Sequence record: NC_031127.1
Length of the DNA stretch: 64,000 nt
Direction: 5' to 3' (one strand)
Within the stretch, counting starts at the first letter, position 1, and each line of letters starts with the position of its first letter. The translations under genes and the position numbers were made by a program. A model generated the notes under the pieces. The model was not told the DNA's origin. It searched no databases and worked only from the letters and a program-made list of their open reading frames with translations. Below are positions 1-17,488 of this stretch, one piece after another.

Positions 1-474
1 ATGACCACGATTGCGTACGACGGGAAAACGCTGGCGTCTGATAGCCAGACGACCCAAGACGGTATTCGCCTGTCGAACTCGGCAGTGAAAATCTTTTCAG
101 CCACACATCGTGACTGGGCAGTCGAGGGGAAGCGCATTGTCGCTTTCGGTGTAGCCGGTAATCTCCACGCCGCTAACGACCTCCGCAACGCAATGGAAAC
201 GTTTGCTGGCCACAAAGCCGGTGACCCGTTTGCCAAAGGTGTGACGTTCGCGTTCATCGCGATTGCCGAAGACCGTACCGTGTTTGTTGGCGGGAAGTAT
301 TCCGATGACGACCGTTCGTGGGTCGTACAAGCTGAATCTCCCGTTGCTGTTGGCAGTGGCGGTGATTTCGCCATAGGTGCCATGGCCGCAGGGGCCAAAG
401 CCGAAGACGCTGTGAGGATTGCATCGAAGTTTGATGTGAACACCAACGATTCGGTTACCTCCATCGATTGTTAG
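1..474 (+). CDS. HslV/proteasome-beta-like Ntn-hydrolase peptidase
   Basis: N-terminal M-TTIAYDG (Thr1 nucleophile after Met removal), DSQTT, a conserved Lys (AVKIF) and the VAVGSGG motif; the ATG is at base 1, so no RBS is visible. Confidence 0.7.
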   Translation: MTTIAYDGKTLASDSQTTQDGIRLSNSAVKIFSATHRDWAVEGKRIVAFGVAGNLHAANDLRNAMETFAGHKAGDPFAKGVTFAFIAIAEDRTVFVGGKYSDDDRSWVVQAESPVAVGSGGDFAIGAMAAGAKAEDAVRIASKFDVNTNDSVTSIDC

Positions 475-486
475 GGAGTTTCACAG

Positions 487-825
487 ATGTCTTCTCACGA
501 TAAACCGCTGATGCTGATTTACAATATCCAGTACACGCTGGATGAAATCGCCAACGCGTTGGGTAACACCCGGATTCCCAATATCCCGATTCTGAAGGAA
601 GTTGTTAGCAACGTTCAGATTCACCAATGGGATGGGTCTAACCACTGCACCGTAGCCGTCGTTACCACCCGCGGTCATATCTGCACGATGGATACATGGC
701 AAGAACCTAACGCAGAAAACCTGCACCGTGTTCTGAACGGTGCGTTGGAACACGCGTTGAAGAATGCAGCTCGGGCGTGGCTCGGTTCGCAAATCAACGG
801 TCTGTCCGACAACGTAGCGTTCTAA
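487..825 (+). CDS. hypothetical protein
   Basis: 112-aa ORF with AGGGAG SD upstream; codon usage like its neighbours. Confidence 0.75.
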   Translation: MSSHDKPLMLIYNIQYTLDEIANALGNTRIPNIPILKEVVSNVQIHQWDGSNHCTVAVVTTRGHICTMDTWQEPNAENLHRVLNGALEHALKNAARAWLGSQINGLSDNVAF

Positions 826-859
826 AAAAGTCTAATTACAAGAATACCTTGTGATATGC
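826..859 (+). promoter_or_regulatory. phage promoter for tRNA-Trp/Cys unit (AATTAC...TATG)
   Basis: AAAAGTCTAATTACAAGAATAC (826-847) is identical to 3997-4018; TATG follows at 856-859; resembles phiKZ middle (AA..TTAC) and late (TATG) motifs. Confidence 0.55.
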
Positions 860-882
860 TGAGAAGCACGTAAATGAATTTT

Positions 883-959
883 GGGGGAGTAGTTCAATTG
901 GCGAGAGCGTCGGATTCCAAATCCGGTTGTTGCAGGTTCGAGTCCTGTCTCCCCTGCCA
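883..959 (+). tRNA. trnW: tRNA-Trp (CCA)
   Basis: Cloverleaf; anticodon loop TTCCAAA, T-loop TTCGAGT, encoded 3' CCA. Confidence 0.95.
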
Positions 960-1022
960 AATTTAGCCAGCAAGAATGTGAGAAACCGCGGAAGACCAAA
1001 TAGTCAATCGCTGGAGAATCTC

Positions 1023-1250
1023 ATGAACCTGTATTTGCTAGAACGTCAAGACGATGTCGGTTACGACGAGTTTGATTCCATAGTCGTTGCAGCTCCTTCG
1101 GAAGCTGTAGCGCGCGCAACGAAGCCCGGCTGGCGAGGGCGTTGGACTGATGTGTATTGCGACGAAGACGGAGTAATCCTGAGATGCGAACTCATTGGTA
1201 CCACGCACTTAGAGGCTGGGGTCGTCCATGCATCGTTCAATGCAGGCTGA
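1023..1250 (+). CDS. small hypothetical phage protein between tRNAs
   Basis: GGAG SD before ATG 1023 (MNLYLLERQDD...); the track's upstream extension overlaps tRNA-Trp and is spurious. Confidence 0.7.
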   Translation: MNLYLLERQDDVGYDEFDSIVVAAPSEAVARATKPGWRGRWTDVYCDEDGVILRCELIGTTHLEAGVVHASFNAG

Positions 1251-1280
1251 ATACCGGTGGGCTTCGGCCCACCACACCTT

Positions 1281-1354
1281 GGGGCGCTGGCCGAGTGGTT
1301 AGGCGCTGGATTGCAAATCCTGTTACCGCGGTTCGATTCCGCGGCGTCCCTCCA
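1281..1354 (+). tRNA. trnC: tRNA-Cys (GCA)
   Basis: Acceptor GGGGCGC/GCGTCCC, loop TTGCAAA, T-loop TTCGATT, discriminator T, CCA. Confidence 0.93.
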
Positions 1355-1395
1355 AATCTTCTGTCTCGCCCGACAGATATACTTTACAAAAAAAC

Positions 1396-1447
1396 CCGTA
1401 GAGCCTTTCGGGGGTGAAGCTAGTTGGAGTGGTTGTTCACTCTACGG
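1396..1447 (+). promoter_or_regulatory. structured leader upstream of terB
   Basis: CCGTAGAG/CTCTACGG 8-bp stem enclosing a CC-TTTCG-GG hairpin and a TGAA/TTCA helix. Confidence 0.35.
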
Positions 1448-1496
1448 TCTTCTACTCCTGGGCGCTGGCTCACCCACCTAAAGGATAAAAAGAATT

Positions 1497-1922
1497 ATGT
1501 TCGGTCTTTTCAAAAAACGCGCTAACCGTGCTATGTCTGAAATCAAAAAATTCGACAAACGTGACCTGGCAGAAGCCGTGGTTAACGCCGCTTACCTGAT
1601 TGCGTACGCGGATGGCGAGCTGGAATCTTCTGAGAAATCGAAAATCGATCAGGTGCTGCGTGCCAACCCGGTACTGTCTAACTTCCAGTCCGAGCTGAAC
1701 ACAATTGCTTCTACAATCATCGCTCAGCTGGAAGCGGACATCGACATCGGTCGTCGTGCTGCCCTGCGCCAGATTGCTGATGTGAAAGGCGACCAGCGCG
1801 AGTGTGAAGACGTTCTGGACGTTGCTGTGGCTATTGCCCGTGCTGATGGCGAAATCGAACCGGCAGAAGTTGAAATGCTGAAACAGATCGCCGAAGCGCT
1901 GGGTCTGCGTTACGACGCGTAA
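1497..1922 (+). CDS. terB: TerB-family (tellurite resistance) protein
   Basis: Two A.ADG.....E motifs (IAYADGELESSE, IARADGEIEPAE) and C-terminal LKQIAEALGL, typical of TerB. Confidence 0.88.
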   Translation: MFGLFKKRANRAMSEIKKFDKRDLAEAVVNAAYLIAYADGELESSEKSKIDQVLRANPVLSNFQSELNTIASTIIAQLEADIDIGRRAALRQIADVKGDQRECEDVLDVAVAIARADGEIEPAEVEMLKQIAEALGLRYDA

Positions 1923-1925
1923 GCC

Positions 1926-2108
1926 ATGAAGCTGAAAACCAAGTTATACATCGGGGCCGCGTTGCTACTGATGCTGCTTGGCAACTTCGTTGGGCGAGCC
2001 TTTACGTTAATCGCCTACGTAGCTGTAATCGGCGTAGTAGCCTATCTGGCCTGGCCTGTCATCAAGAAGTTTGCGGCGAAGTCGCAGGCGAAGGTGAAAG
2101 GCAAGTAG
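1926..2108 (+). CDS. small membrane protein (2 hydrophobic segments)
   Basis: 60 aa, hydrophobic core with Lys-rich ends, directly after terB. Confidence 0.7.
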   Translation: MKLKTKLYIGAALLLMLLGNFVGRAFTLIAYVAVIGVVAYLAWPVIKKFAAKSQAKVKGK

Positions 2109-2114
2109 TAATTC

Positions 2115-2151
2115 GGTGCGGGGGTCGTTCCCTCCGCACCACCCTTTTATT
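2115..2151 (+). terminator. intrinsic terminator
   Basis: GGTGCGG/CCGCACC stem followed by a T-rich tract. Confidence 0.55.
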
Positions 2152-2174
2152 CTCATCTAAAAATAGGTATAACC

Positions 2175-3014
2175 ATGAGAAAGGTGCTTTTCGGAATACT
2201 TGCAGCGTTGACGTTTAGCATGTCCGCAGTCGCGGCAGACGAAGTAGTGATTACCACAGGACAGCAGGGCCTGACCTATAACTCGGTCTATGGCGTTAAT
2301 CTGGCCGGTGCCATCAGCGAGTTCGGTACTCGTGCACGGGTCATCCCGTCGAAGGGGTCGTTAGACAACCTCGATAAAGTTGCCGCCGGTGAAGCCCAGA
2401 TTGGTTTCACGCAGGCAGATGCTTTCCAGTTCTGGCGCGCTAAGCACCCGAACGAAGCGCAGAACGTTGACATCGTCGGTCAGCTGGCCCGTGAATGTGT
2501 CTGGGTCGCTGTCAAGAAAGATGGCAAAGTTAAAGATGCGAAAGATTTAACCGATGGCGTGAAAATCGCAGTCGGTGAACCGGACTCTGGCTCCTACGCC
2601 AGTTGGCAATATCTGCAACAGTTGGTGAAAGAGTATTCCAAAGCGGAAACTTACGCCAAGGGCGGTATCCGTTCGTTGTCCAAAGTGGCAACGGGTGAAT
2701 ACGACGCATTCCTGTGGGTATCTGCGCCGGATAAAAGCAACAAATTCCTCGAAGCGGTCAATCAAGACAGTTCTGGTTTAGAGCTGATTGACATGAGCAC
2801 ATGGAACGTCAACGACAAACTGCCTAACGGCCAGTCTGTGTATACGAAAGAAACGGCCAAGACAGACAAGACCGCGTTCTTCGGTAAGAAAGTTGATGTT
2901 CCGTGCACCACCACACTCGTCGTGGCCAACACTGACGCTGGTGATGATCTGCTCGAAACCGTTTCTACCATCCTCCTGAAAAACAATTCACGAGTGATGG
3001 GGGACAAAAAATAA
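2175..3014 (+). CDS. TAXI-family TRAP transporter solute-binding protein
   Basis: Signal peptide (…SAVA-AD), ITTGQQG..Y, SKGSLDNL, IGFTQAD and VGEPDSGS motifs. Confidence 0.82.
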   Translation: MRKVLFGILAALTFSMSAVAADEVVITTGQQGLTYNSVYGVNLAGAISEFGTRARVIPSKGSLDNLDKVAAGEAQIGFTQADAFQFWRAKHPNEAQNVDIVGQLARECVWVAVKKDGKVKDAKDLTDGVKIAVGEPDSGSYASWQYLQQLVKEYSKAETYAKGGIRSLSKVATGEYDAFLWVSAPDKSNKFLEAVNQDSSGLELIDMSTWNVNDKLPNGQSVYTKETAKTDKTAFFGKKVDVPCTTTLVVANTDAGDDLLETVSTILLKNNSRVMGDKK

Positions 3015-3020
3015 AAATAT

Positions 3021-3650
3021 GTACTGACCCAGTGCATCTTTTCGGGCTGGGTAGGGTTAATGTCCCTACCTGCGCGGTGTTCGTTAAGGCTGGTAACGTT
3101 CGCTAAGACCTATCGCATACCCGTAAGTCGATAGCAGCCGGTTACACAAAGAACTATCCATGTGGTAGGTAACCGACCGTTCACGATCTCATTAGGTGAG
3201 CAAATAATCTATGCAAGGACTTCTAGGATTTGTGCTCGACATGATGGGCAGCTTACGCCGCCTCATCAAGCAGTTACGAATCTGGAAGCTTGCCCATTAC
3301 TGGTTTACAGGCGAAAAGGCATCTCGTGAGAGTGTGCCATGCAAACTGCGTATTTACATTAGTATGTTCACTGCGGTGAGCATAGGTCAAGCCCCGGAAC
3401 GATAAGCCGGTCAGCTACGCCTGTAAAATACAATCTGAAAATCATAATGGGATTAAGTTCCCAGATTTGAAAAGGCGACTGTGTGTCGTCGGCGATAACC
3501 CCCCGTCGTGGACTCGGTTATCCCAAAGGTAATGTGAAAGGGGTTGGTGCTTGGAGGCGCTAAGACCGGCGGATACGCTGGCTCAGAAGAAGAAGAAGTC
3601 CATCAACCCCGTTCTCACCTGAGTAACACCCTTTACAAGGCGTTACTTAT
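3021..3650 (+). ncRNA. candidate large (~630 nt) structured non-coding RNA
   Basis: No credible ORF; more than 12 helices, including long-range TTTACAGGCG/CGCCTGTAAA, ATGGGCAGCTT/AAGCTTGCCCAT and GGGGTTGGTG/CATCAACCCC; begins at the G of a TATG. Confidence 0.6.
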
Positions 3651-3671
3651 ATATGCGAAAGCGAGGTGAAC

Positions 3672-3998
3672 ATGGGAATGTATCGTGAAGGCCCTGAAAG
3701 CACGGTGACTCACCGTAATCATGATTACTCTGTGGATGCATTGCTGGATATAGCGGAACGTCATAGCCTCGTTCAAATTCCAGTGTCTAGAATAGAATGG
3801 ATTTTAAACGAGACTACGCTCGATGATGAGCGGGTTAAGAATGCAGATACGGATTATCCAATAATCGTGCTGCACGAAGGAAGTTTGTATATTGTATTAG
3901 ACGGTGCCCATCGCCTTGCGAAGGCGGTAGCCGAAGGCAAAGACACCATCGCAGCCAAGATATTGGTGCCTGCGAATTTACCGAAACCGGTACGATAA
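3672..3998 (+). CDS. stand-alone ParB/Srx-like N-terminal domain protein
   Basis: PIIV...IVLDGAHRLAKA motif; GAGG SD. Confidence 0.72.
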   Translation: MGMYREGPESTVTHRNHDYSVDALLDIAERHSLVQIPVSRIEWILNETTLDDERVKNADTDYPIIVLHEGSLYIVLDGAHRLAKAVAEGKDTIAAKILVPANLPKPVR

Positions 3999-4029
3999 AA
4001 GTCTAATTACAAGAATACACTGTATTATG
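3997..4029 (+). promoter_or_regulatory. phage promoter for the main tRNA/ncRNA operon
   Basis: 22-bp exact copy of 826-847 followed by TATG (4026-4029). Confidence 0.55.
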
Positions 4030-4108
4030 TCGGAAACCCGATTTGATGTTGCACAGAGCGTTACGCTGCGGCGTTTGCTGGTGTGCAGGGTTAGGTCGGG
4101 ATTCTGGC
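4029..4108 (+). ncRNA. 80-nt rod-like hairpin RNA at the operon 5' end
   Basis: GTCGGAA/TTCTGGC, CCCGA/TCGGG and TGCAC/GTGCA stacked helices. Confidence 0.45.
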
Positions 4109-4116
4109 ACCTATTT

Positions 4117-4202
4117 GGCGGGTTACTCAAGCGGTCAACGAGAGCAGACTGTAAATCTGTTGCCTTCGGGCTTCGTAGGTTCAAATCCTTCACACGCCAC
4201 CA
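4117..4202 (+). tRNA. trnY: tRNA-Tyr (GTA), with stem mismatches
   Basis: Loop CTGTAAA, long variable arm, CCA end; G-A mismatch in the acceptor stem and T-T in the T stem. Confidence 0.88.
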
Positions 4203-4208
4203 AACAAT

Positions 4209-4428
4209 GGTACCTGTCACAGCAGCCCTTGAGGCTTACGCGATGATGACTGGTCGCCCATTTTACCGGGTAACACATTCCTGCCAGCGCGCTATTGCCG
4301 CGAAGGTTTGCCCCCGGTGTTGTGCGTTATTCGGGTCTACCCACCATCTGCGGATGGTGCGTTGATGTCTCGATATACGCCATAGGGACGCCTTGAGAAC
4401 TCCGTGAAATTCGGAGAGGTACCACCCA
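4209..4428 (+). ncRNA. ~218-nt tRNA-like RNA (acceptor stem + T-arm with large insert)
   Basis: GGTACCT/AGGTACC acceptor, CTCCG-TGAAATT-CGGAG arm, ends ACCCA; internal helices. Confidence 0.55.
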
Positions 4429-4495
4429 TTCTTGTGTTTCCTTATCCTGAAGACATTCCTAAGACAAATTCATTCATGGTCGAGGAAACACAGAA
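4429..4495 (+). ncRNA. hairpin with conserved 37-nt loop, copy A
   Basis: 13-bp stem TTCT(T)GTGTTTCCT/AGGAAACACAGAA; loop similar to 5579-5615. Confidence 0.55.
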
Positions 4496-4503
4496 CCTAT
4501 TCA

Positions 4504-4579
4504 GGTGCTATCGTCTAGTGGCCGAGGATACTACCCTGTCACGGTAGAGACCGGAGTTCGATTCTCCGTAGCACCGCCA
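4504..4579 (+). tRNA. trnD: tRNA-Asp (GTC)
   Basis: Cloverleaf, loop CTGTCAC, CCA. Confidence 0.95.
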
Positions 4580-4587
4580 TTTTCAAA

Positions 4588-4663
4588 TGCGTCTTAGCTC
4601 AGTTGGTAGAGCGCACCCCTGATAAGGGTGAGGCCACTGGTTCAAGTCCAGTAGATGCAACCA
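4588..4663 (+). tRNA. trnI: tRNA-Ile (GAT)
   Basis: Cloverleaf, loop CTGATAA, CCA. Confidence 0.95.
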
Positions 4664-4670
4664 GTATTGC

Positions 4671-4747
4671 ATTCCCGTCATCTAGTTGGTCCAGGATACG
4701 ACACTTTCACTGTCGGTACACGAGTTCAAATCTCGTCGGGAATACCA
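4671..4747 (+). tRNA. trnE: tRNA-Glu (TTC)
   Basis: Cloverleaf, loop CTTTCAC, CCA. Confidence 0.95.
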
Positions 4748-4752
4748 TTTGT

Positions 4753-4843
4753 AGAGAATTGACTGAGTTGGTTTAAGGTGCTCCCCTGCTAAGGGAGTGT
4801 ATGCGAAAGTGTACCATTGGTTCGAATCCAATATTCTCTGCCA
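4753..4843 (+). tRNA. trnS: tRNA-Ser (GCT)
   Basis: Loop CTGCTAA, long variable arm, discriminator G, CCA. Confidence 0.93.
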
Positions 4844-4844
4844 T

Positions 4845-5018
4845 GTTCTCTTGCTGTGGGAAATAGAAGCGAACGTAGAAACGCCGGTTAGCTCAAAGCT
4901 TAGAGCGTCTCATCTTCGGATGAGAAGGTTGGGGGCGCAACCCGAAATCCCTATCGGCAACGGCCTGCTTGTCAGGATTAGAAACATCTACGTGGATGGG
5001 TACTTCTACAGCAAGAAC
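4845..5018 (+). ncRNA. multibranch RNA enclosing a tRNA-like module (4883-4959)
   Basis: Outer stems GTTC..TTGCTGT/ACAGCAAGAAC and TAGAAG/CTTCTA; inner D-arm-like AGCTC..GAGC and an anticodon arm capped by cUUCGg. Confidence 0.5.
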
Positions 5019-5042
5019 AAAACAGTGGGAGCATTGTCCACT

Positions 5043-5151
5043 GTGACACCGGCAAAGGTTTCGACCTTGCGGGTTGGGCGGAAGCCCGATGTTCCCCCGA
5101 ACGCTGGCCTTCTGGCCAATACAGTGAAAGCTTACCCTTGCCGATGATCAC
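5043..5151 (+). ncRNA. multibranch structured RNA
   Basis: CGGCAA/TTGCCG and GGGT/ACCC close four tetraloop hairpins (TTCG, GGAA, CCCC, TTCT). Confidence 0.45.
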
Positions 5152-5224
5152 CTCTTCTGCTGCTGCCAACACACTGTATAACCAGAATCAGTCCTGCCTT
5201 AAATGGCAAGCGTTCACCCTTTAC

Positions 5225-5302
5225 GTTTCCTCAAGGCGGCTTGGGGTGTTATCTCTCGGCTCTGTTGGGTAACATCGTGGTTCAACTCCATGGGAAACAC
5301 CA
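5225..5302 (+). tRNA. aberrant tRNA-like RNA, anticodon unassignable
   Basis: Acceptor GTTTCCT/GGGAAAC + A + CCA, T-arm CGTGG-TTCAACT-CCATG; 4-nt D loop; 9-bp anticodon-position stem with a 14-nt loop. Confidence 0.55.
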
Positions 5303-5308
5303 AACAAT

Positions 5309-5400
5309 GGCTCCGTAGCTAAATCGGTAGAGGCAGACTTTAATTAGTTCTCCAACGATTTTATAATCGCGTGGTGTAGGTTCAAGTCCTACCGGAGCAA
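5309..5400 (+). pseudogene. degenerate type-II-like tRNA (possibly derived from Leu-TAA)
   Basis: GCTCCG/CGGAGC acceptor, GTAGG-TTCAAGT-CCTAC T-arm, long variable arm; 6-nt anticodon loop, no CCA. Confidence 0.5.
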
Positions 5401-5474
5401 GAGCACTGCTGTTAAGTTGGTTAACACCCGACCCATACTCGGATATTCGCACGTTCGATTCGTGCCAGTGCTCG
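5401..5474 (+). tRNA. atypical tRNA with CAT anticodon (Met or Ile2)
   Basis: GAGCACT/AGTGCTC acceptor, loop CCCATAC (C33 instead of U33), T-loop TTCGATT; CCA not encoded. Confidence 0.65.
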
Positions 5475-5484
5475 CCCTTATTTA

Positions 5485-5560
5485 GACTCTGTAGTTCAGT
5501 TGGTAGAACGGTGGACTGTTAATCCATATGTCGCAGGTTCGAGTCCTGCCAGAGTCGCCA
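5485..5560 (+). tRNA. trnN: tRNA-Asn (GTT)
   Basis: Cloverleaf, loop CTGTTAA, CCA. Confidence 0.96.
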
Positions 5561-5566
5561 CATTTT

Positions 5567-5626
5567 GCATTGCCCGAGTCCCGAATGACATTCCGGAAAA
5601 ATATCATCCATGGTCACGGGCAGTGC
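5567..5626 (+). ncRNA. hairpin with conserved 37-nt loop, copy B
   Basis: 10-bp stem GCATTGCCCG/CGGGCAGTGC; loop similar to 4445-4481. Confidence 0.55.
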
Positions 5627-5831
5627 AGAACCAAAATCCCAGCCTTCGCAGAAAAAGCTTACCTGCATTAGCGGTCCCCTGCGGGGGTTGGGTACCACCT
5701 TTGTCCGTTTTGTTTTTTTCTTTCAATTGCCTGGCGGTATTGGTGGGAACAAAACGGGTAAAGCCCTAGCGGGGGAAAAGCCGTTAACAACAACAGAAGC
5801 AGTAAAAACAGAAGTAAAAGCAGGAGTAGTT

Positions 5832-6644
5832 ATGTTTACTATCTTACGCAAAATCAATGGTAACCGCACACCAACCGAACACGAATCCCCTACGCTGGGT
5901 GATACGAAGTCACAAGTGTTCAAAGATGCGATGTCGCTTCTTACCGAATCCAATAACGTGCATAACTGCATGGATTCTGGGATGGATGCGAAGCCGTGGA
6001 TTAACGGCAAACCCAAACCGATTGAGGAGTGGGTAGAGCGCTTTAAGAAAGCGTACGGCGCGACAGACTCAGACAACCAAGAACTGGTTTCTCTGGTCAG
6101 TGAACTCGCACCGGGAATGTTTGACAAAGCCAATGCGCGTTTTGCATCGGACTTTGGTCAACTGGAAGAAGCCTTCCTGAAAGATACCGGGCAAACTATC
6201 ATCTGGAAATGTCCGAACGGACTCCCGATTGATATCCAGTTCCAAAACATTCCCCGTCAGTCTGTTGAAACACTACATACCACGCTCGATTTCATCGAAG
6301 CGGATGAGTTGAAGTTTGCGGTGTTCAACAGCAAGGCGTTGTGGGATGGGTATAACTCCGCTGAACTGTTTGGCGGTGAAGCCACCGAGATTTCCTCGGT
6401 AGAACTCCAACACGTTTACTTTGACGATACGGCCATGCCGCAAGAAGCGGTGCTCAAAGCCAACCGTCGTGGTACCCGCACTATGGAACAGGTCATCGGG
6501 GTGCTTGCTTATGGCAGCTCCGAACAACCCGACCCAACCACAGGCAACGTGCCGGTCACAGTGATGACCTACGAGTTTATCTACCAAGGCGATGAAGTCT
6601 ACATTACGAACCGTCACGGTAAGACCGTGGACTCCATCCGTTAA
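5832..6644 (+). CDS. hypothetical protein
   Basis: AGGAG SD before ATG 5832 (MFTILRK...); the track's start at 5610 overlaps structured RNA. Confidence 0.8.
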   Translation: MFTILRKINGNRTPTEHESPTLGDTKSQVFKDAMSLLTESNNVHNCMDSGMDAKPWINGKPKPIEEWVERFKKAYGATDSDNQELVSLVSELAPGMFDKANARFASDFGQLEEAFLKDTGQTIIWKCPNGLPIDIQFQNIPRQSVETLHTTLDFIEADELKFAVFNSKALWDGYNSAELFGGEATEISSVELQHVYFDDTAMPQEAVLKANRRGTRTMEQVIGVLAYGSSEQPDPTTGNVPVTVMTYEFIYQGDEVYITNRHGKTVDSIR

Positions 6645-6746
6645 GCATTAGCATGCTCGCTAATACCCGCCCTGAGGATTGGCCTCCTCATGCTTGAAGG
6701 GCGACTCTCCTGTAGTACGCTTTGTAAGTCGACGTAAATCGGTACG

Positions 6747-6789
6747 CCCTCTCCCCGAAAAGGGAGAGGGTAGTATCGTATATTTTTTT
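6747..6789 (+). terminator. intrinsic terminator
   Basis: CCCTCTCCC/GGGAGAGGG stem with a downstream T run. Confidence 0.55.
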
Positions 6790-6794
6790 GGATA

Positions 6795-6810
6795 TATATT
6801 ACCTAGGTGA
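6795..6810 (+). promoter_or_regulatory. early-type phage promoter KATATTAYC-N3-GTGA
   Basis: TATATTACCTAGGTGA; one of six copies; contains the phiKZ early motif TATATTAC. Confidence 0.65.
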
Positions 6811-6859
6811 GATTAAACTATAATCTTTTACCCATCATTAGACTTTCGAGGATAAACTT

Positions 6860-7840
6860 ATGCGCATCACCCCAATGTCAGCCCATGAAACTTTCGCTAT
6901 TCGTGGCTACAGCCCCGAAGAAGGCAAACGTATCCGCGGCTATCTCCCGCGTCGCTTTGGTGACATCAACAATGCACTGCCACTAACGAACGCCGAGTTC
7001 TGGTTGGCGTACGAGTGCATGAAACATTACAATGATAATTCCAGTGACCGTGGTCGTTTTTACAGCGTCGGGCCGTTTAGCTTCCAAGCCAACGGTAAAG
7101 TGAACTACCGCTCTGAGAAGTTAAACGAAGATTTCTCCATGGTGGAATTCATTCGTCACTTCGGTGACACGGTCTTCACTGACTTCGATGCTGAACTGGG
7201 TATGAAGGTCCCACGCACTAACGCAGACGGCTCGCTGGTAATGAAGAACCGCATGGTCGTCACTCGTCTGGTAGAGATTGAGAAGCAAGCTCAACCGAAA
7301 GAAGATTATTCCAGTTGGCACACCAACAGCTGGATGAACTTCCCGGTGGGGTCACTCTCCTTACCACCGACTGGGATGATATCGCCGGAAACTATCCTGA
7401 TGGCATCCTTACATGGCGAGATGGCGCAAGAGTATGCCAATACGCAGAGCGGTCGTATGTTCCATCCCACGATTGATTACAAATGGGTGGCAACGTACGT
7501 TTACCTGAAGCGTTTATACCATGCACGCGACCGCGAGTTCGGTCAGGATTATTACTCTGTTCGCTCATCCATTGAAATGAACCTGCGTTTCCGTTCAAGT
7601 AACTCACTCTATCCGAGCGATGTCATGACACCACCTCACTTCTTCCACATTGATGGGGATCGTGTCATGTCCAAGAACGGCATCATTAACTGTCCACGCA
7701 TCAACAACATGAATCCGATGGGGTTCTACGAAAGGCTTTATCGCTTCAACAACAACGGCCATGTTTCTGCTATCGCAACCATCCCCACTACACTCTTCGA
7801 AGAGTACAGTGAAGAGGAATGGAAAGCAGTCTTAGCATAA
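6860..7840 (+). CDS. hypothetical early protein
   Basis: 326-aa ORF, GAGGA SD, flanked by promoter and terminator. Confidence 0.85.
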   Translation: MRITPMSAHETFAIRGYSPEEGKRIRGYLPRRFGDINNALPLTNAEFWLAYECMKHYNDNSSDRGRFYSVGPFSFQANGKVNYRSEKLNEDFSMVEFIRHFGDTVFTDFDAELGMKVPRTNADGSLVMKNRMVVTRLVEIEKQAQPKEDYSSWHTNSWMNFPVGSLSLPPTGMISPETILMASLHGEMAQEYANTQSGRMFHPTIDYKWVATYVYLKRLYHARDREFGQDYYSVRSSIEMNLRFRSSNSLYPSDVMTPPHFFHIDGDRVMSKNGIINCPRINNMNPMGFYERLYRFNNNGHVSAIATIPTTLFEEYSEEEWKAVLA

Positions 7841-7846
7841 CCTTAG

Positions 7847-7877
7847 AGCGGGGGGTAAAACCCCGCTTTATTTTTTT
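7847..7877 (+). terminator. intrinsic terminator
   Basis: AGCGGGG/CCCCGCT stem + T tract. Confidence 0.7.
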
Positions 7878-7912
7878 ACTTGAATACCTGATTTATATAG
7901 GAGGGTAACATC

Positions 7913-8353
7913 ATGAAATCCAATTTGGCTTACAGCTTTAACATTATTCCATTCTATCAACCCATCGAAATGACGCGTGCGTTAACCGACGGTATTTTAC
8001 CTGAGACGTTTATACCGAAAGGTCGTTACGATGAAATGTTGCTGGAGACGCTGTTCCCCATCATCATTAGTCATCCATTATTCAGAGAGTTTTCATCTAA
8101 GCTGACACCCCAAGAAGGGTCGGGTTTCCGTAAGGGTGATGACGTGCCGGTAATTACCACCACGTATAACATCTCACGAGAGGAAGCGAAAGCCATGGCG
8201 CGCGACCCGGATGTTTTCTTCCGGTTCATGAAGTCAATGGCAGAGGCTTTAGATAAACGTGCCCTGCCGTTTGAGGAAATCTTCGCTGTGCTCCTCGACG
8301 CCATCTGTGCAAGTGACTATGCCATGTTCCACAACACAGACAGTCTGCACTAA
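7913..8353 (+). CDS. hypothetical protein
   Basis: 146 aa, AGGAGG SD. Confidence 0.8.
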   Translation: MKSNLAYSFNIIPFYQPIEMTRALTDGILPETFIPKGRYDEMLLETLFPIIISHPLFREFSSKLTPQEGSGFRKGDDVPVITTTYNISREEAKAMARDPDVFFRFMKSMAEALDKRALPFEEIFAVLLDAICASDYAMFHNTDSLH

Positions 8354-8419
8354 AAATTACGCCAGAGTCCCTCCCTATAGGGAATCTGTGCCTGTATAGA
8401 TTCCAATAGGAGATGAACC

Positions 8420-8806
8420 ATGAAGACGACACTGCGTCCGATGGACGTGATTCTCGCTCACCCCGACACGCTCAGCAAAATCGCACCACAGTCAGAACTC
8501 GACCGCCGGTTATTAGAAAGCCTAGAATGGGGATTTACCCTCCACCCAGATGAGGTTTCCAACACACGCGTTCTTGATGTCTCCGACACCGTGGTGATTG
8601 ACTGGACTGAACGTGAAGGATGTGACGATGTGCGAGAGTACGTGGCGCAAGCAACGGTACCTCCACGCGTACCCATCGCCGGACTGGCTGAACACACCAT
8701 TTCTCTGCGCCGTTTATGCAACGCTCAAGATGAGATTGTTCGCAACGGTGAAGCGTGGAGTTATGGTACTGCCAGTCACCTGAAGAACGTGCTGCTTCAG
8801 GCGTAA
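8420..8806 (+). CDS. hypothetical protein
   Basis: 128 aa, AGGAG SD. Confidence 0.8.
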   Translation: MKTTLRPMDVILAHPDTLSKIAPQSELDRRLLESLEWGFTLHPDEVSNTRVLDVSDTVVIDWTEREGCDDVREYVAQATVPPRVPIAGLAEHTISLRRLCNAQDEIVRNGEAWSYGTASHLKNVLLQA

Positions 8807-8861
8807 AAAAAGAAAAGAAGATAACCCCTGCCGAAGCAGGGGTTGGTCTTTCTTTTTTTGT
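8807..8861. terminator. bidirectional terminator between convergent genes
   Basis: A tract, AACCCCTGC/GCAGGGGTT stem, T tract. Confidence 0.75.
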
Positions 8862-9674
8862 CTACGATTTGAAACGACCACCGGACATGTAGTTGTAACG
8901 GTTTCCGATGTCGTCGTTGTGAACCAACGCGCGCTTCATCGCAGGTAGGGTGTCATCAAACATCTGCCCCGCATCCGAATAACTTTCCACCACGTTACGG
9001 AAGGCACCGAACTCCATACCGTTCTCAATCTTACCGGAATCCATATCGAAGATGAGTTGGTTATAGATGTATTGCTTCGTGGCAAAGACCGCCAAGTCAG
9101 CCACACGCGGATAGAATGGCGTCTTGATTTCGTTCAGTTCTTCACTGAGCTTATACATGATCGCAATCTTCGTGGCGTAGACAAACATACCGGGATCTTT
9201 AATCTTGATGGTGTTCGGTCCCAGTACACGCACCTCAGGTGAACTGATGCGCGGTAAAGCAGAGTTCGAATCCACCACTAACTGCGTCGCAGCGAGCGCA
9301 CCGGTGGTGGCCCCATCCAAATACGAGCCCGCAGGCGGGAGTGTATACGCCTGACCGGCCACCGGCGTAACTGCGATGTGCGCTTCGAGGATTTCGCGGC
9401 CACCCGTTTTAAATTCATTGATGTGGTAAATGCGCGAGTAGTAGTCTTCCGTATCGTTCTCATAGGGCAACCCCTGCAAGTCAAGTTCGGTATATTGCCC
9501 CATACGGGACACTTCGGGAATCACATACTCACGAATCACTTTATCCATGATTTCGTTTTCAATGCTACTGGCCACGCCTAACATCCGGAGGTTCTCTGGT
9601 GTAAAGGCGACTTTCAGCAGCGGTAAAGGAATGTCTCGCCGGATTTTGCGGAGACAATAATCTATCACGTTCAT
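8862..9674 (-). CDS. conserved jumbo-phage protein, probably virion-associated
   Basis: 270-aa ORF with GGAG SD; isolated minus-strand gene before the early block, as in SPN3US-like phages (synteny inference). Confidence 0.7.
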   Translation of the reverse strand: MNVIDYCLRKIRRDIPLPLLKVAFTPENLRMLGVASSIENEIMDKVIREYVIPEVSRMGQYTELDLQGLPYENDTEDYYSRIYHINEFKTGGREILEAHIAVTPVAGQAYTLPPAGSYLDGATTGALAATQLVVDSNSALPRISSPEVRVLGPNTIKIKDPGMFVYATKIAIMYKLSEELNEIKTPFYPRVADLAVFATKQYIYNQLIFDMDSGKIENGMEFGAFRNVVESYSDAGQMFDDTLPAMKRALVHNDDIGNRYNYMSGGRFKS

Positions 9675-17398: not shown

Positions 17399-17432
17399 AA
17401 TGAGGTAATTGCACCCTTTCGAGTGCAATTAC
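17390..17432. terminator. terminator between convergent genes (main polarity minus)
   Basis: GTAATTGCAC/GTGCAATTAC 10-bp stem with an A tract on the left. Confidence 0.65.
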
Positions 17433-17488
17433 AAGTTATTCCCTATTATATGTAAACCGGAATGGTTTACGGGGGAGGGAGTAAATTC

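Follow-up and report, generated by a model that had tools for sequence, protein, structure and literature searches.

Genes and features at the locus

The window analyzed here, the whole 64,000-nt stretch of sequence record NC_031127.1, corresponds to the first 64 kb of Erwinia phage vB_EamM_Huxley (KX397368), an SPN3US-like jumbo phage of the genus Machinavirus, and window coordinates are identical to record coordinates. Within the first 6 kb, all genes, together with nine to ten tRNA genes, are carried on the + strand. The subject of this study is the ~650-nt gap in that region (3015-3665), which lies beside the tRNA genes and extends from the end of gp8 (2175-3014, + strand), encoding a TAXI/TRAP solute-receptor-like protein (Pfam NMT1_3), to the start of a small ParB-like gene (3666-3998, + strand; PHROG 17560). 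The GenBank annotation places two tiny open reading frames (ORFs) in this gap: gp9 (3211-3405) and gp10 (3547-3669). Comparison with related phages indicates that the gap contains one colinear, + strand module of ~570 nt (3048-3612), made up of a structured 5' leader (domain D1), the small gene gp9, a folded domain overlapping the 3' half of gp9 (D2), and a structured 3' domain (D3). All features of the module described below are on the + strand.

An initial annotation of this DNA had proposed that a large, purely noncoding RNA occupies positions 3021-3650, beginning at the G of a TATG sequence. The gap itself, and its position beside the tRNA genes, are as described there, and it folds more stably than dinucleotide-shuffled sequence (z = -5.0 for the + strand and -8.3 for the - strand), but the proposed extent gives way to the conserved boundaries of 3048-3612. 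Even close relatives do not share the TATG at 3018-3021 (SNU6 has TTTG and L030 has CATG), and it is absent in the other clades. It belongs to an upstream flank (3015-3047, + strand) that also holds an AT-rich tract and a lineage-specific hairpin, ACCCAG/CTGGGT, and that lies outside the conserved module. In the phiEaH2 clade, the first helix of D1 begins at most 16 nt past the stop codon of the upstream gene.

Distribution and conservation of the module

A blastn search against phage genomes found the region in 50-52 records, and all searches together yielded homologs in ~55 SPN3US-like phage genomes and nine metagenome contigs. The carriers fall into four to five clades: the Huxley type and the Caitlin/ChrisDB type of Machinavirus; Seoulvirus, including SPN3US, the SPFM phages, E. 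coli Lh1B, Proteus phage 7, and pEa_SNUABM_29; and the phiEaH2/Stratton/Asesino/Kwan/Wellington group. Most carrier genomes have the region annotated as empty. Removal of near-duplicates left 24 nonredundant sequences that represent the four to five clades and, across the region, share in some cases only ~40-50% identity; this set underlies the comparisons that follow. All 24 sequences contain every part of the module in the same order over the interval corresponding to 3048-3612; D1, the ORF, D2, and D3 were never seen apart, and their spacing is constant.

In every clade the module is positioned in the tRNA gene region, with tRNA genes flanking it throughout. The flanking protein genes, in contrast, vary by clade: the TAXI gene is not upstream of the module in Seoulvirus or ChrisDB, and the ParB-like gene, which looks like a lineage-specific insertion, is limited to Huxley-type genomes, the module of the Caitlin type being followed directly by the tRNA-Tyr leader. 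Because these neighbors differ between clades, the module is autonomous, staying in the tRNA region as the protein genes around it change. Nucleotide identity is 62-70% for D3, 51-59% for D1, and 35-57% for the N-terminal half of the ORF. The neighboring TAXI gene surpasses each of these parts in conservation (70-78%), so the module is not unusually conserved in absolute terms; the signal lies in its pattern of change.

Homologs were also sought by DNA pattern in viral contigs, metagenome contigs, and bacterial genomes. The scans of viral and metagenome contigs contributed additional members, those of viral sequences returning nothing outside the SPN3US-like phages. Fifteen of the 24 metagenome pattern loci were discarded as chance matches after nhmmer and inspection by eye, and the single match from bacterial genomes, in Prevotella, was likewise attributed to chance (8.7 bits). 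No extra copies of the module were found in the 64-kb window, where D3 is present in single copy. The comparisons point to a new RNA family that is restricted to SPN3US-like phages of Enterobacterales.

TAXI-like homologs in Klebsiella phage FBKp24 (L054) and Pseudaeromonas phage KLEP7 (L055) also adjoin tRNA genes and unannotated gaps of 750-890 nt (L054, 7485-8233; L055, 4838-5725), and KLEP7 has an unannotated tRNA at 5036-5107. Neither gap yielded an Rfam family or a D1 or D3 homolog; covariance models of the two domains, applied beside these TAXI genes, gave no credible match, the best scoring 13 bits and lying within coding sequence.

The 5' domain, D1

D1 (3048-3193) is a covariation-supported leader of five helices and a pseudoknot. 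P1 (3048-3056/3064-3072) is capped by a conserved 7-nt loop and is followed by P2 (3074-3078/3176-3180), a variable insert hairpin (3079-3104), P3 (3110-3115/3129-3134), P4 (3139-3145/3169-3175), and P5 (3154-3158/3164-3168). Four bases of the P1 loop (3059-3062) pair with 3190-3193 to form the pseudoknot. Of 26 pairs predicted by RNAalifold, 19 exhibit compensatory changes. On a model-based alignment, 97.7% of cells are paired, relative to 75.7% in shuffles, and the covariation score of 0.601 compares with 0.200 in shuffles, none of 500 being as high, and with 0.055-0.087 in slid-partner controls. Of 96 pseudoknot cells, 95 are paired. The pseudoknot occurs as GAUG/CAUU, GGUA/UACU, and GAUA/UAUU, two of its positions covarying (A-U/G-C and G-C/A-U).

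The helices also reveal the strand. G-U pairs occupy 127 of 1169 helix cells (~11%), and these would be C-A mismatches on the other strand; the RNA is therefore that of the + strand. This observation bears on the idea that the region acts as DNA, for instance as a parS-like site, a site for packaging, or an origin close to the end of the genome, whose inverted repeats bind a protein. Such a role would suit a location 3 kb from the record start and, in Huxley, beside a ParB-like gene, as well as the ability of both strands to fold well. It would not account for pairing that persists, by compensatory change, as the sequence diverges, nor for G-U cells that pair only in + strand RNA, and most of the clades with the module lack the ParB-like gene. 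We consider a DNA-level element scarcely tenable.

An additional pairing can be drawn between AGCCGG in D1 (3136-3141) and CUGGUU (3300-3305), which encodes Tyr-Trp-Phe codons of gp9. It is possible in 23-24 of the 24 sequences, shows only one-sided changes, and competes with the covarying P4; it may represent an alternative conformer linking D1 to the ORF.

A conserved small gene, gp9

The initial annotation held that the gap contains no credible ORF and is purely noncoding. The comparison contradicts the first statement and does not support the second: the central third of the module is gp9 (3211-3405), a conserved ORF of 64 amino acids in Huxley and 55-64 in its relatives. The frame is open in all 24 sequences, with the start and the TAA stop each falling within the same aligned block, and the clade-specific lengths (64, 63, 55-57, or 61-62 codons) differ by multiples of three. 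Among 11 representatives, frame 0 has no stops over gp9, whereas the other five frames typically have one to six; the exception is SNU4, in which frame +1 is also stop-free. The probability of a stop-free frame in composition-matched shuffles is 0.03-0.09 per sequence, or jointly ~1e-5 over four largely independent clades. Over codons 2-25, the nucleotides approach saturation (35-57% identity), and BLOSUM62 similarity is higher in frame 0 than in the other two frames, and higher than a column-shuffle null, in eight of eight pairs (P = 0.000-0.017). From codon 26 onward the amino-acid signal is weak, which fits RNA constraints dominating the remainder of the gene.

In Huxley, a Shine-Dalgarno (SD)-like purine tract, GGUGAG (3195-3200), follows the pseudoknot strand directly on its 3' side and precedes the AUG by 10 nt; across the family, a purine tract (GGUGA, GAGAG, GAUGAG, or ACGAGA) is found 6-10 nt 5' of the ORF start in every clade. 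A hairpin, P6, that would sequester this tract was rejected as poorly conserved, its two middle pairs forming in 14 of 24 sequences.

The encoded peptide has an N-terminal amphipathic helix, a W-x-L-x-H-Y-W-[FL]-[TS]-G core, and a poorly conserved tail ending in A-P-x-x. Structure prediction (AF2) models residues 2-33 as a helix (pLDDT ~80), with a low-confidence remainder. A profile search of 1.84 billion proteins recovered four significant clusters, whose lengths match the clades. Searches of Pfam gave no match, and those of PHROGs only its own cluster. The sole other match to the profile was weak (E = 2e-5), to a 325-amino-acid protein (P0005) in which five short repeats match profile positions 23-43. 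Together, the comparative evidence points to translation of gp9, which we regard as a real, fast-evolving small protein gene, and one that belongs in the annotation of the ~40 genomes in which the region has been left blank.

These data weigh on the proposal that the module is one large, purely noncoding ornate RNA of the GOLLD/ROOL kind, with an incidental ORF. The size, the many helices, and the position beside phage tRNA genes are what such an RNA would display, and both the shaping of the 3' half of the ORF mainly by RNA constraints and a weak within-clade synonymous bias agree with it. An incidental ORF, however, is hard to reconcile with a frame that is open throughout the family while the other frames, SNU4 aside, typically contain stops, with length differences in multiples of three, with amino-acid similarity confined to frame 0, or with an SD-like tract in every clade; further, no Rfam family, GOLLD and ROOL included, matches at E<=10. 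A purely noncoding RNA is, in our judgment, very unlikely.

D2 overlaps the coding region

D2 (3304-3427) overlaps the 3' half of gp9. It is closed by P7 (3304-3313/3418-3427), and contains P8 (3318-3338), a GNRA-capped hairpin (loop 3326-3329); the P10 hairpin (3363-3384); and P11 (3390-3416), which presents the gp9 stop codon (3403-3405) in a 9-nt loop. P8 and P10 have compensating stems. The P8 loop is GUGA, GCAA, GUAA, or GAGA across the family, always conforming to GNRA, and P10 compensates both within and between clades (e.g., CCG/CGG vs. CUA/UAG in L017 and L024). P7 and P11 are invariant in 19 sequences of three clades, and thus neither helix allows a covariation test; in the phiEaH2 clade, the closing helix is replaced by GUGGG/CCCAC. 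D2 is the weakest supported of the three domains.

D3 and the 3' end of the module

The 3' domain, D3 (3428-3612), spans ~185 nt and has six helices and invariant single strands. An invariant single strand, ACAAUCUGA (3430-3438), precedes Pb (3448-3452/3459-3463) and Pc (3474-3479/3485-3490; loop UGUGU), after which come Pd (~3491-3525), a variable, swappable hairpin, and a purine-rich linker (3526-3539). The terminal helix, Pe (3540-3552/3596-3610), encloses Pg (3563-3571/3576-3584) and the invariant GGAG and GAAGAAG strands. Of 39 pairs, 16 are compensatory by the alignment fold, or 17 by a pair count on the model-based alignment, on which 98.0% of cells are paired (86.0% in shuffles). The covariation score, 0.360, compares with 0.144 in shuffles, none of 500 being as high, and with 0.041-0.076 in slid controls. 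An AAUCUG/CAGAUU pairing was rejected because it is not conserved.

With D1 and D3 each scoring above all 500 shuffles, the central proposal of the initial annotation, that of a large multihelix RNA element adjoining the phage tRNA genes, is borne out by conservation and by real covariation in homologs. Its individual helices fared variously in the 24 sequences: most are real, four being kept by compensatory change, and two features are confined to the Huxley lineage. GGTAGGG/CCCTACC is paired in 93% of cells with four of seven pairs compensatory, CTATCG/CGATAG in 99% (five of six), GGTTAC/GTAACC in 100% (four of six), and GGGGTTGGTG/CATCAACCCC in 99% (four of 10). GATAACC/GGTTATC, compensatory at five of seven pairs, is a variable hairpin, replaced as a whole, and TTTACAGGCG/CGCCTGTAAA is invariant in three clades, and hence uninformative, the phiEaH2 clade using a different closing helix. 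The lineage-specific features are the 11-bp helix ATGGGCAGCTT/AAGCTTGCCCAT (41% of cells paired) and the 5' GACCC/GGGT "pseudoknot," which corresponds to the ACCCAG/CTGGGT hairpin of the upstream flank (44%).

Parts of D3 are exchanged between lineages. Pd exists in at least three unrelated versions, and in the Huxley clade pSal-SNUABM-04 and its type (L004/L031) have the version of the Seoulvirus/phiEaH2 clades, a distribution that suggests module exchange by recombination between phage lineages. In two Wellington-like contigs (L051, 1880-1950, and L050), the terminal helix of D3 is retained through compensatory changes (GGAGGGGAUG/CAUCCCCUCC), and the otherwise invariant interior, GGUGCUUGGAG...GAAGAAGUCC, has been swapped for unrelated sequence.

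The 40-amino-acid gp10 of the GenBank annotation (3547-3669) lies inside D3 and the promoter-like region downstream. Its frame is broken in relatives (by a stop at codon 8 in SPFM17, a stop at codon 23 in SNU29, and a frameshift in SNU43), it overlaps the covarying helices Pe and Pg, and it has no PHROG or Pfam match. We consider gp10 a spurious call, given its broken frame, and suggest that the annotation be removed.

Directly 3' of the module, before the ParB-like and tRNA genes, is a promoter-like motif that ends in TATG, TTACAAG-N-TATATATG (3633-3655). Relatives have TTTACA..TATATATG (Caitlin type) or TTTACG..AGTATG (Seoulvirus) at this position, and the motif is missing from phiEaH2-type genomes. 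Its TATG ending is shared with the late promoters of phiKZ, described as T(-3)ATG(+1) (PMC7598289). A resembling motif is present at 17429-17452 (+ strand), the shared form being TTACAAG-(N9-10)-TAT(TA)TATG; the count of this pattern is not above chance. The two sites are candidate phage promoters, a function that for 3633-3655 we infer from the motif.

The arrangement at this end raises the question of whether the locus holds separate neighboring units, i.e., D1 and gp9 as a small regulated gene, and D3 as an independent stable RNA cut from a tRNA precursor. Precedent exists in the species 1 and 2 RNAs of T4, which are noncoding, ~120-140 nt long, and have ends made by tRNA processing enzymes; like D3, they are structured non-tRNA RNAs among phage tRNA genes, and no homology with them is expected. 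In L017 and L022, both of the phiEaH2 type, the tRNA starts 3 nt past the end of D3, so that the two abut in one clade; the terminal subdomain of D3 and Pd are exchanged between lineages as modules; and across genera blastn detects D3 alone. Independent units would not, however, be expected to remain together in fixed order and spacing in 24 sequences of four to five clades, and promoter-like motifs are absent between the parts, most clades having one between D3 and the tRNAs. We rate separate units as distinctly unlikely.

Two observations concern the neighboring tRNA genes. The tRNA-Tyr gene (4117-4202) is preceded by a leader of ~65-90 nt (4026-4089, + strand) that starts at a TATATG/TTATG motif (4023-4028), is ~76% conserved in Caitlin-type phages, and is alignable in Seoulvirus; it may combine a promoter with a structured tRNA leader. 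The segment 5402-5473 (+ strand), which lies between the tRNA-Ile(AAT) and tRNA-Asn genes of the annotation, matches the Rfam tRNA model at 38.9 bits and has no tRNA entry in ARAGORN or GenBank; it may be an unannotated or degenerate tRNA.

Comparison with known RNA families and systems

We ran cmscan against Rfam 15 with permissive filters on 2990-3700 (E<=10), on 1-9000 (E<=1), and on four relatives from other clades. No family matches the module at E<=10, and only tRNAs were found in the four relatives. The sole match, to a snoRNA model, was rejected; it had E=10 and lay on the wrong strand. Given the lack of a match, GOLLD, ROOL, OLE, tmRNA, RNase P, group I and II introns, and known riboswitches were excluded as families. 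The suggestion in the initial annotation that the element is of the GOLLD/ROOL type is thus not supported, in Huxley or in its relatives; the other half of that suggestion, a new class, was the better one, provided that the class is understood as structured RNA that encloses a coding gene.

GOLLD- and ROOL-type large phage RNAs are among the least understood RNAs. The module resembles GOLLD (RF01998) and ROOL (RF03087) in being several hundred nucleotides long, having many helices and a pseudoknot, and being phage-encoded beside tRNA genes. It differs from them (i) in lacking covariance-model similarity at E<=10, (ii) in having a conserved, apparently translated ORF of 55-64 codons in its middle in all 24 sequences, and (iii) in being confined to one group of enterobacterial jumbo phages. 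We know of no large phage RNA of this sort that carries a gene.

Other comparisons are functional. Staphylococcus RNAIII/hld and E. coli SgrS/SgrT, like the module, have folded domains around a small peptide ORF, with the RNA more constrained than the peptide, but neither has any sequence or structural relation to it; the module is phage-encoded and lies within a tRNA cluster, and its structured domains are much longer than those of SgrS. It recalls tmRNA (SsrA) in having pseudoknots around a short ORF, a stop codon in a hairpin region, and an association with tRNA biology. It nevertheless has no tRNA-like domain, as judged by ARAGORN over the window and by the Rfam tmRNA models, and gp9, unlike the tmRNA tag ORF, has a start codon (AUG), besides an SD-like tract of its own, and its 55-64 codons far exceed the length of a tag. 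As a ~150-nt multihelix leader with a pseudoknot abutting the ribosome-binding site, D1 is reminiscent of riboswitches and of autoregulatory leaders such as those of ribosomal-protein genes and phage translational operators; it matches no known class of these, and the large 3' domain would not be explained. As a functional kind rather than a homologous family, dual-function RNA agrees with the compensatory structure on both sides of the ORF (19 of 26 pairs in D1 and 17 of 39 in D3).

A proposed composite RNA

The reading toward which we lean, with modest confidence, is that the module is one composite + strand RNA that serves both as a folded RNA and as an mRNA, i.e., a dual-function RNA. From the anatomy of the locus, we infer that it is transcribed, translated, and processed, and that it may act in trans. 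The main competing explanation is an ordinary small protein gene, in which D1 would be a leader of the riboswitch, thermometer, or protein-operator type, D2 and D3 would stabilize the 3' end, and the RNA would have no function of its own. The conservation of the ORF with protein-level constraint, and the way the D1 pseudoknot abuts the SD-like tract, are both in keeping with this simpler scheme; autoregulatory leaders of ribosomal-protein and phage genes are of comparable size and have pseudoknots. On the other hand, the best-conserved part of the module is D3, ~185 nt with six helices and invariant loops located 3' of the stop codon, which is unusual for a mere stabilizer; the peptide diverges much faster than its "UTRs" (untranslated regions); and no known riboswitch or leader family matches. 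A plain small gene therefore seems to us somewhat unlikely. The dual-function RNA is favored over a small gene with decorative UTRs because the parts always occur together and in order, because the N-terminal half of the ORF is less conserved than either D3 or D1, and because loops and junctions are invariant; the data favor one of these two readings without deciding between them. Further, the RNA domains are too elaborate for mere padding around so small a gene, which argues for an RNA function beyond the regulation of gp9.

Several points weigh against a single dual-function RNA. No conserved promoter was found upstream of the module and no intrinsic terminator downstream, and a scan for sigma-70 promoters and terminators returned sites at chance level. 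Because the RNA ends are not defined by a promoter or terminator, D1, the ORF, and D3 could sit on different transcripts. The neighboring TAXI gene, at 70-78% nucleotide identity, is more conserved than any part of the module, which is the faster evolving of the two. The SD-like tract is weak, and the codon-position (third-position) bias of gp9 within clades is only mild, from which it follows that the peptide evolves fast; profile searches, Pfam, and structure prediction gave it no relatives outside these phages and no predicted function. Three clades show no variation in the closing helix of D2, and the fourth has another helix in its place. Searches of the literature on these phages found no transcript, ribosome, or proteome data for the region. 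A function of the RNA in trans is, finally, pure conjecture on our part.

If the dual-function reading is correct, the anatomy of the three domains suggests how the RNA might operate. The module would be transcribed with, or beside, the phage tRNA genes. D1 and its pseudoknot would gate the accessibility of the ribosome-binding site, and ribosomes reading gp9 would melt D2. D3 would persist as a stable body at the 3' end, to which a protein or ribosomal partner binds; in the phiEaH2 clade, the 3' end of D3 would be made by an RNase P cut at the adjoining tRNA.

Significance for SPN3US-like phages

The module constitutes a structured RNA family that is well supported, has not been catalogued, and encloses a conserved small ORF. 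It is experimentally accessible: SPN3US, which carries it, is a genetically tractable model giant phage, and it is also present in the Erwinia phages studied for the control of fire blight. The role of the RNA, cooperation between the peptide and the RNA, and the expression of phage tRNA regions could all be tested through it. A bolder proposal, which we regard as rather unlikely, would make this the first translated member of the "ornate" large phage RNAs, the ~570-nt RNA and its small, basic, amphipathic peptide together forming a ribonucleoprotein specific to the phage, or else a device directed at the ribosome or at tRNA. If that were true, such an RNA-peptide assembly would serve the nucleus-forming SPN3US-like phages in the cytoplasm, one conceivable task being to adjust translation or the way in which the phage tRNA set is used.

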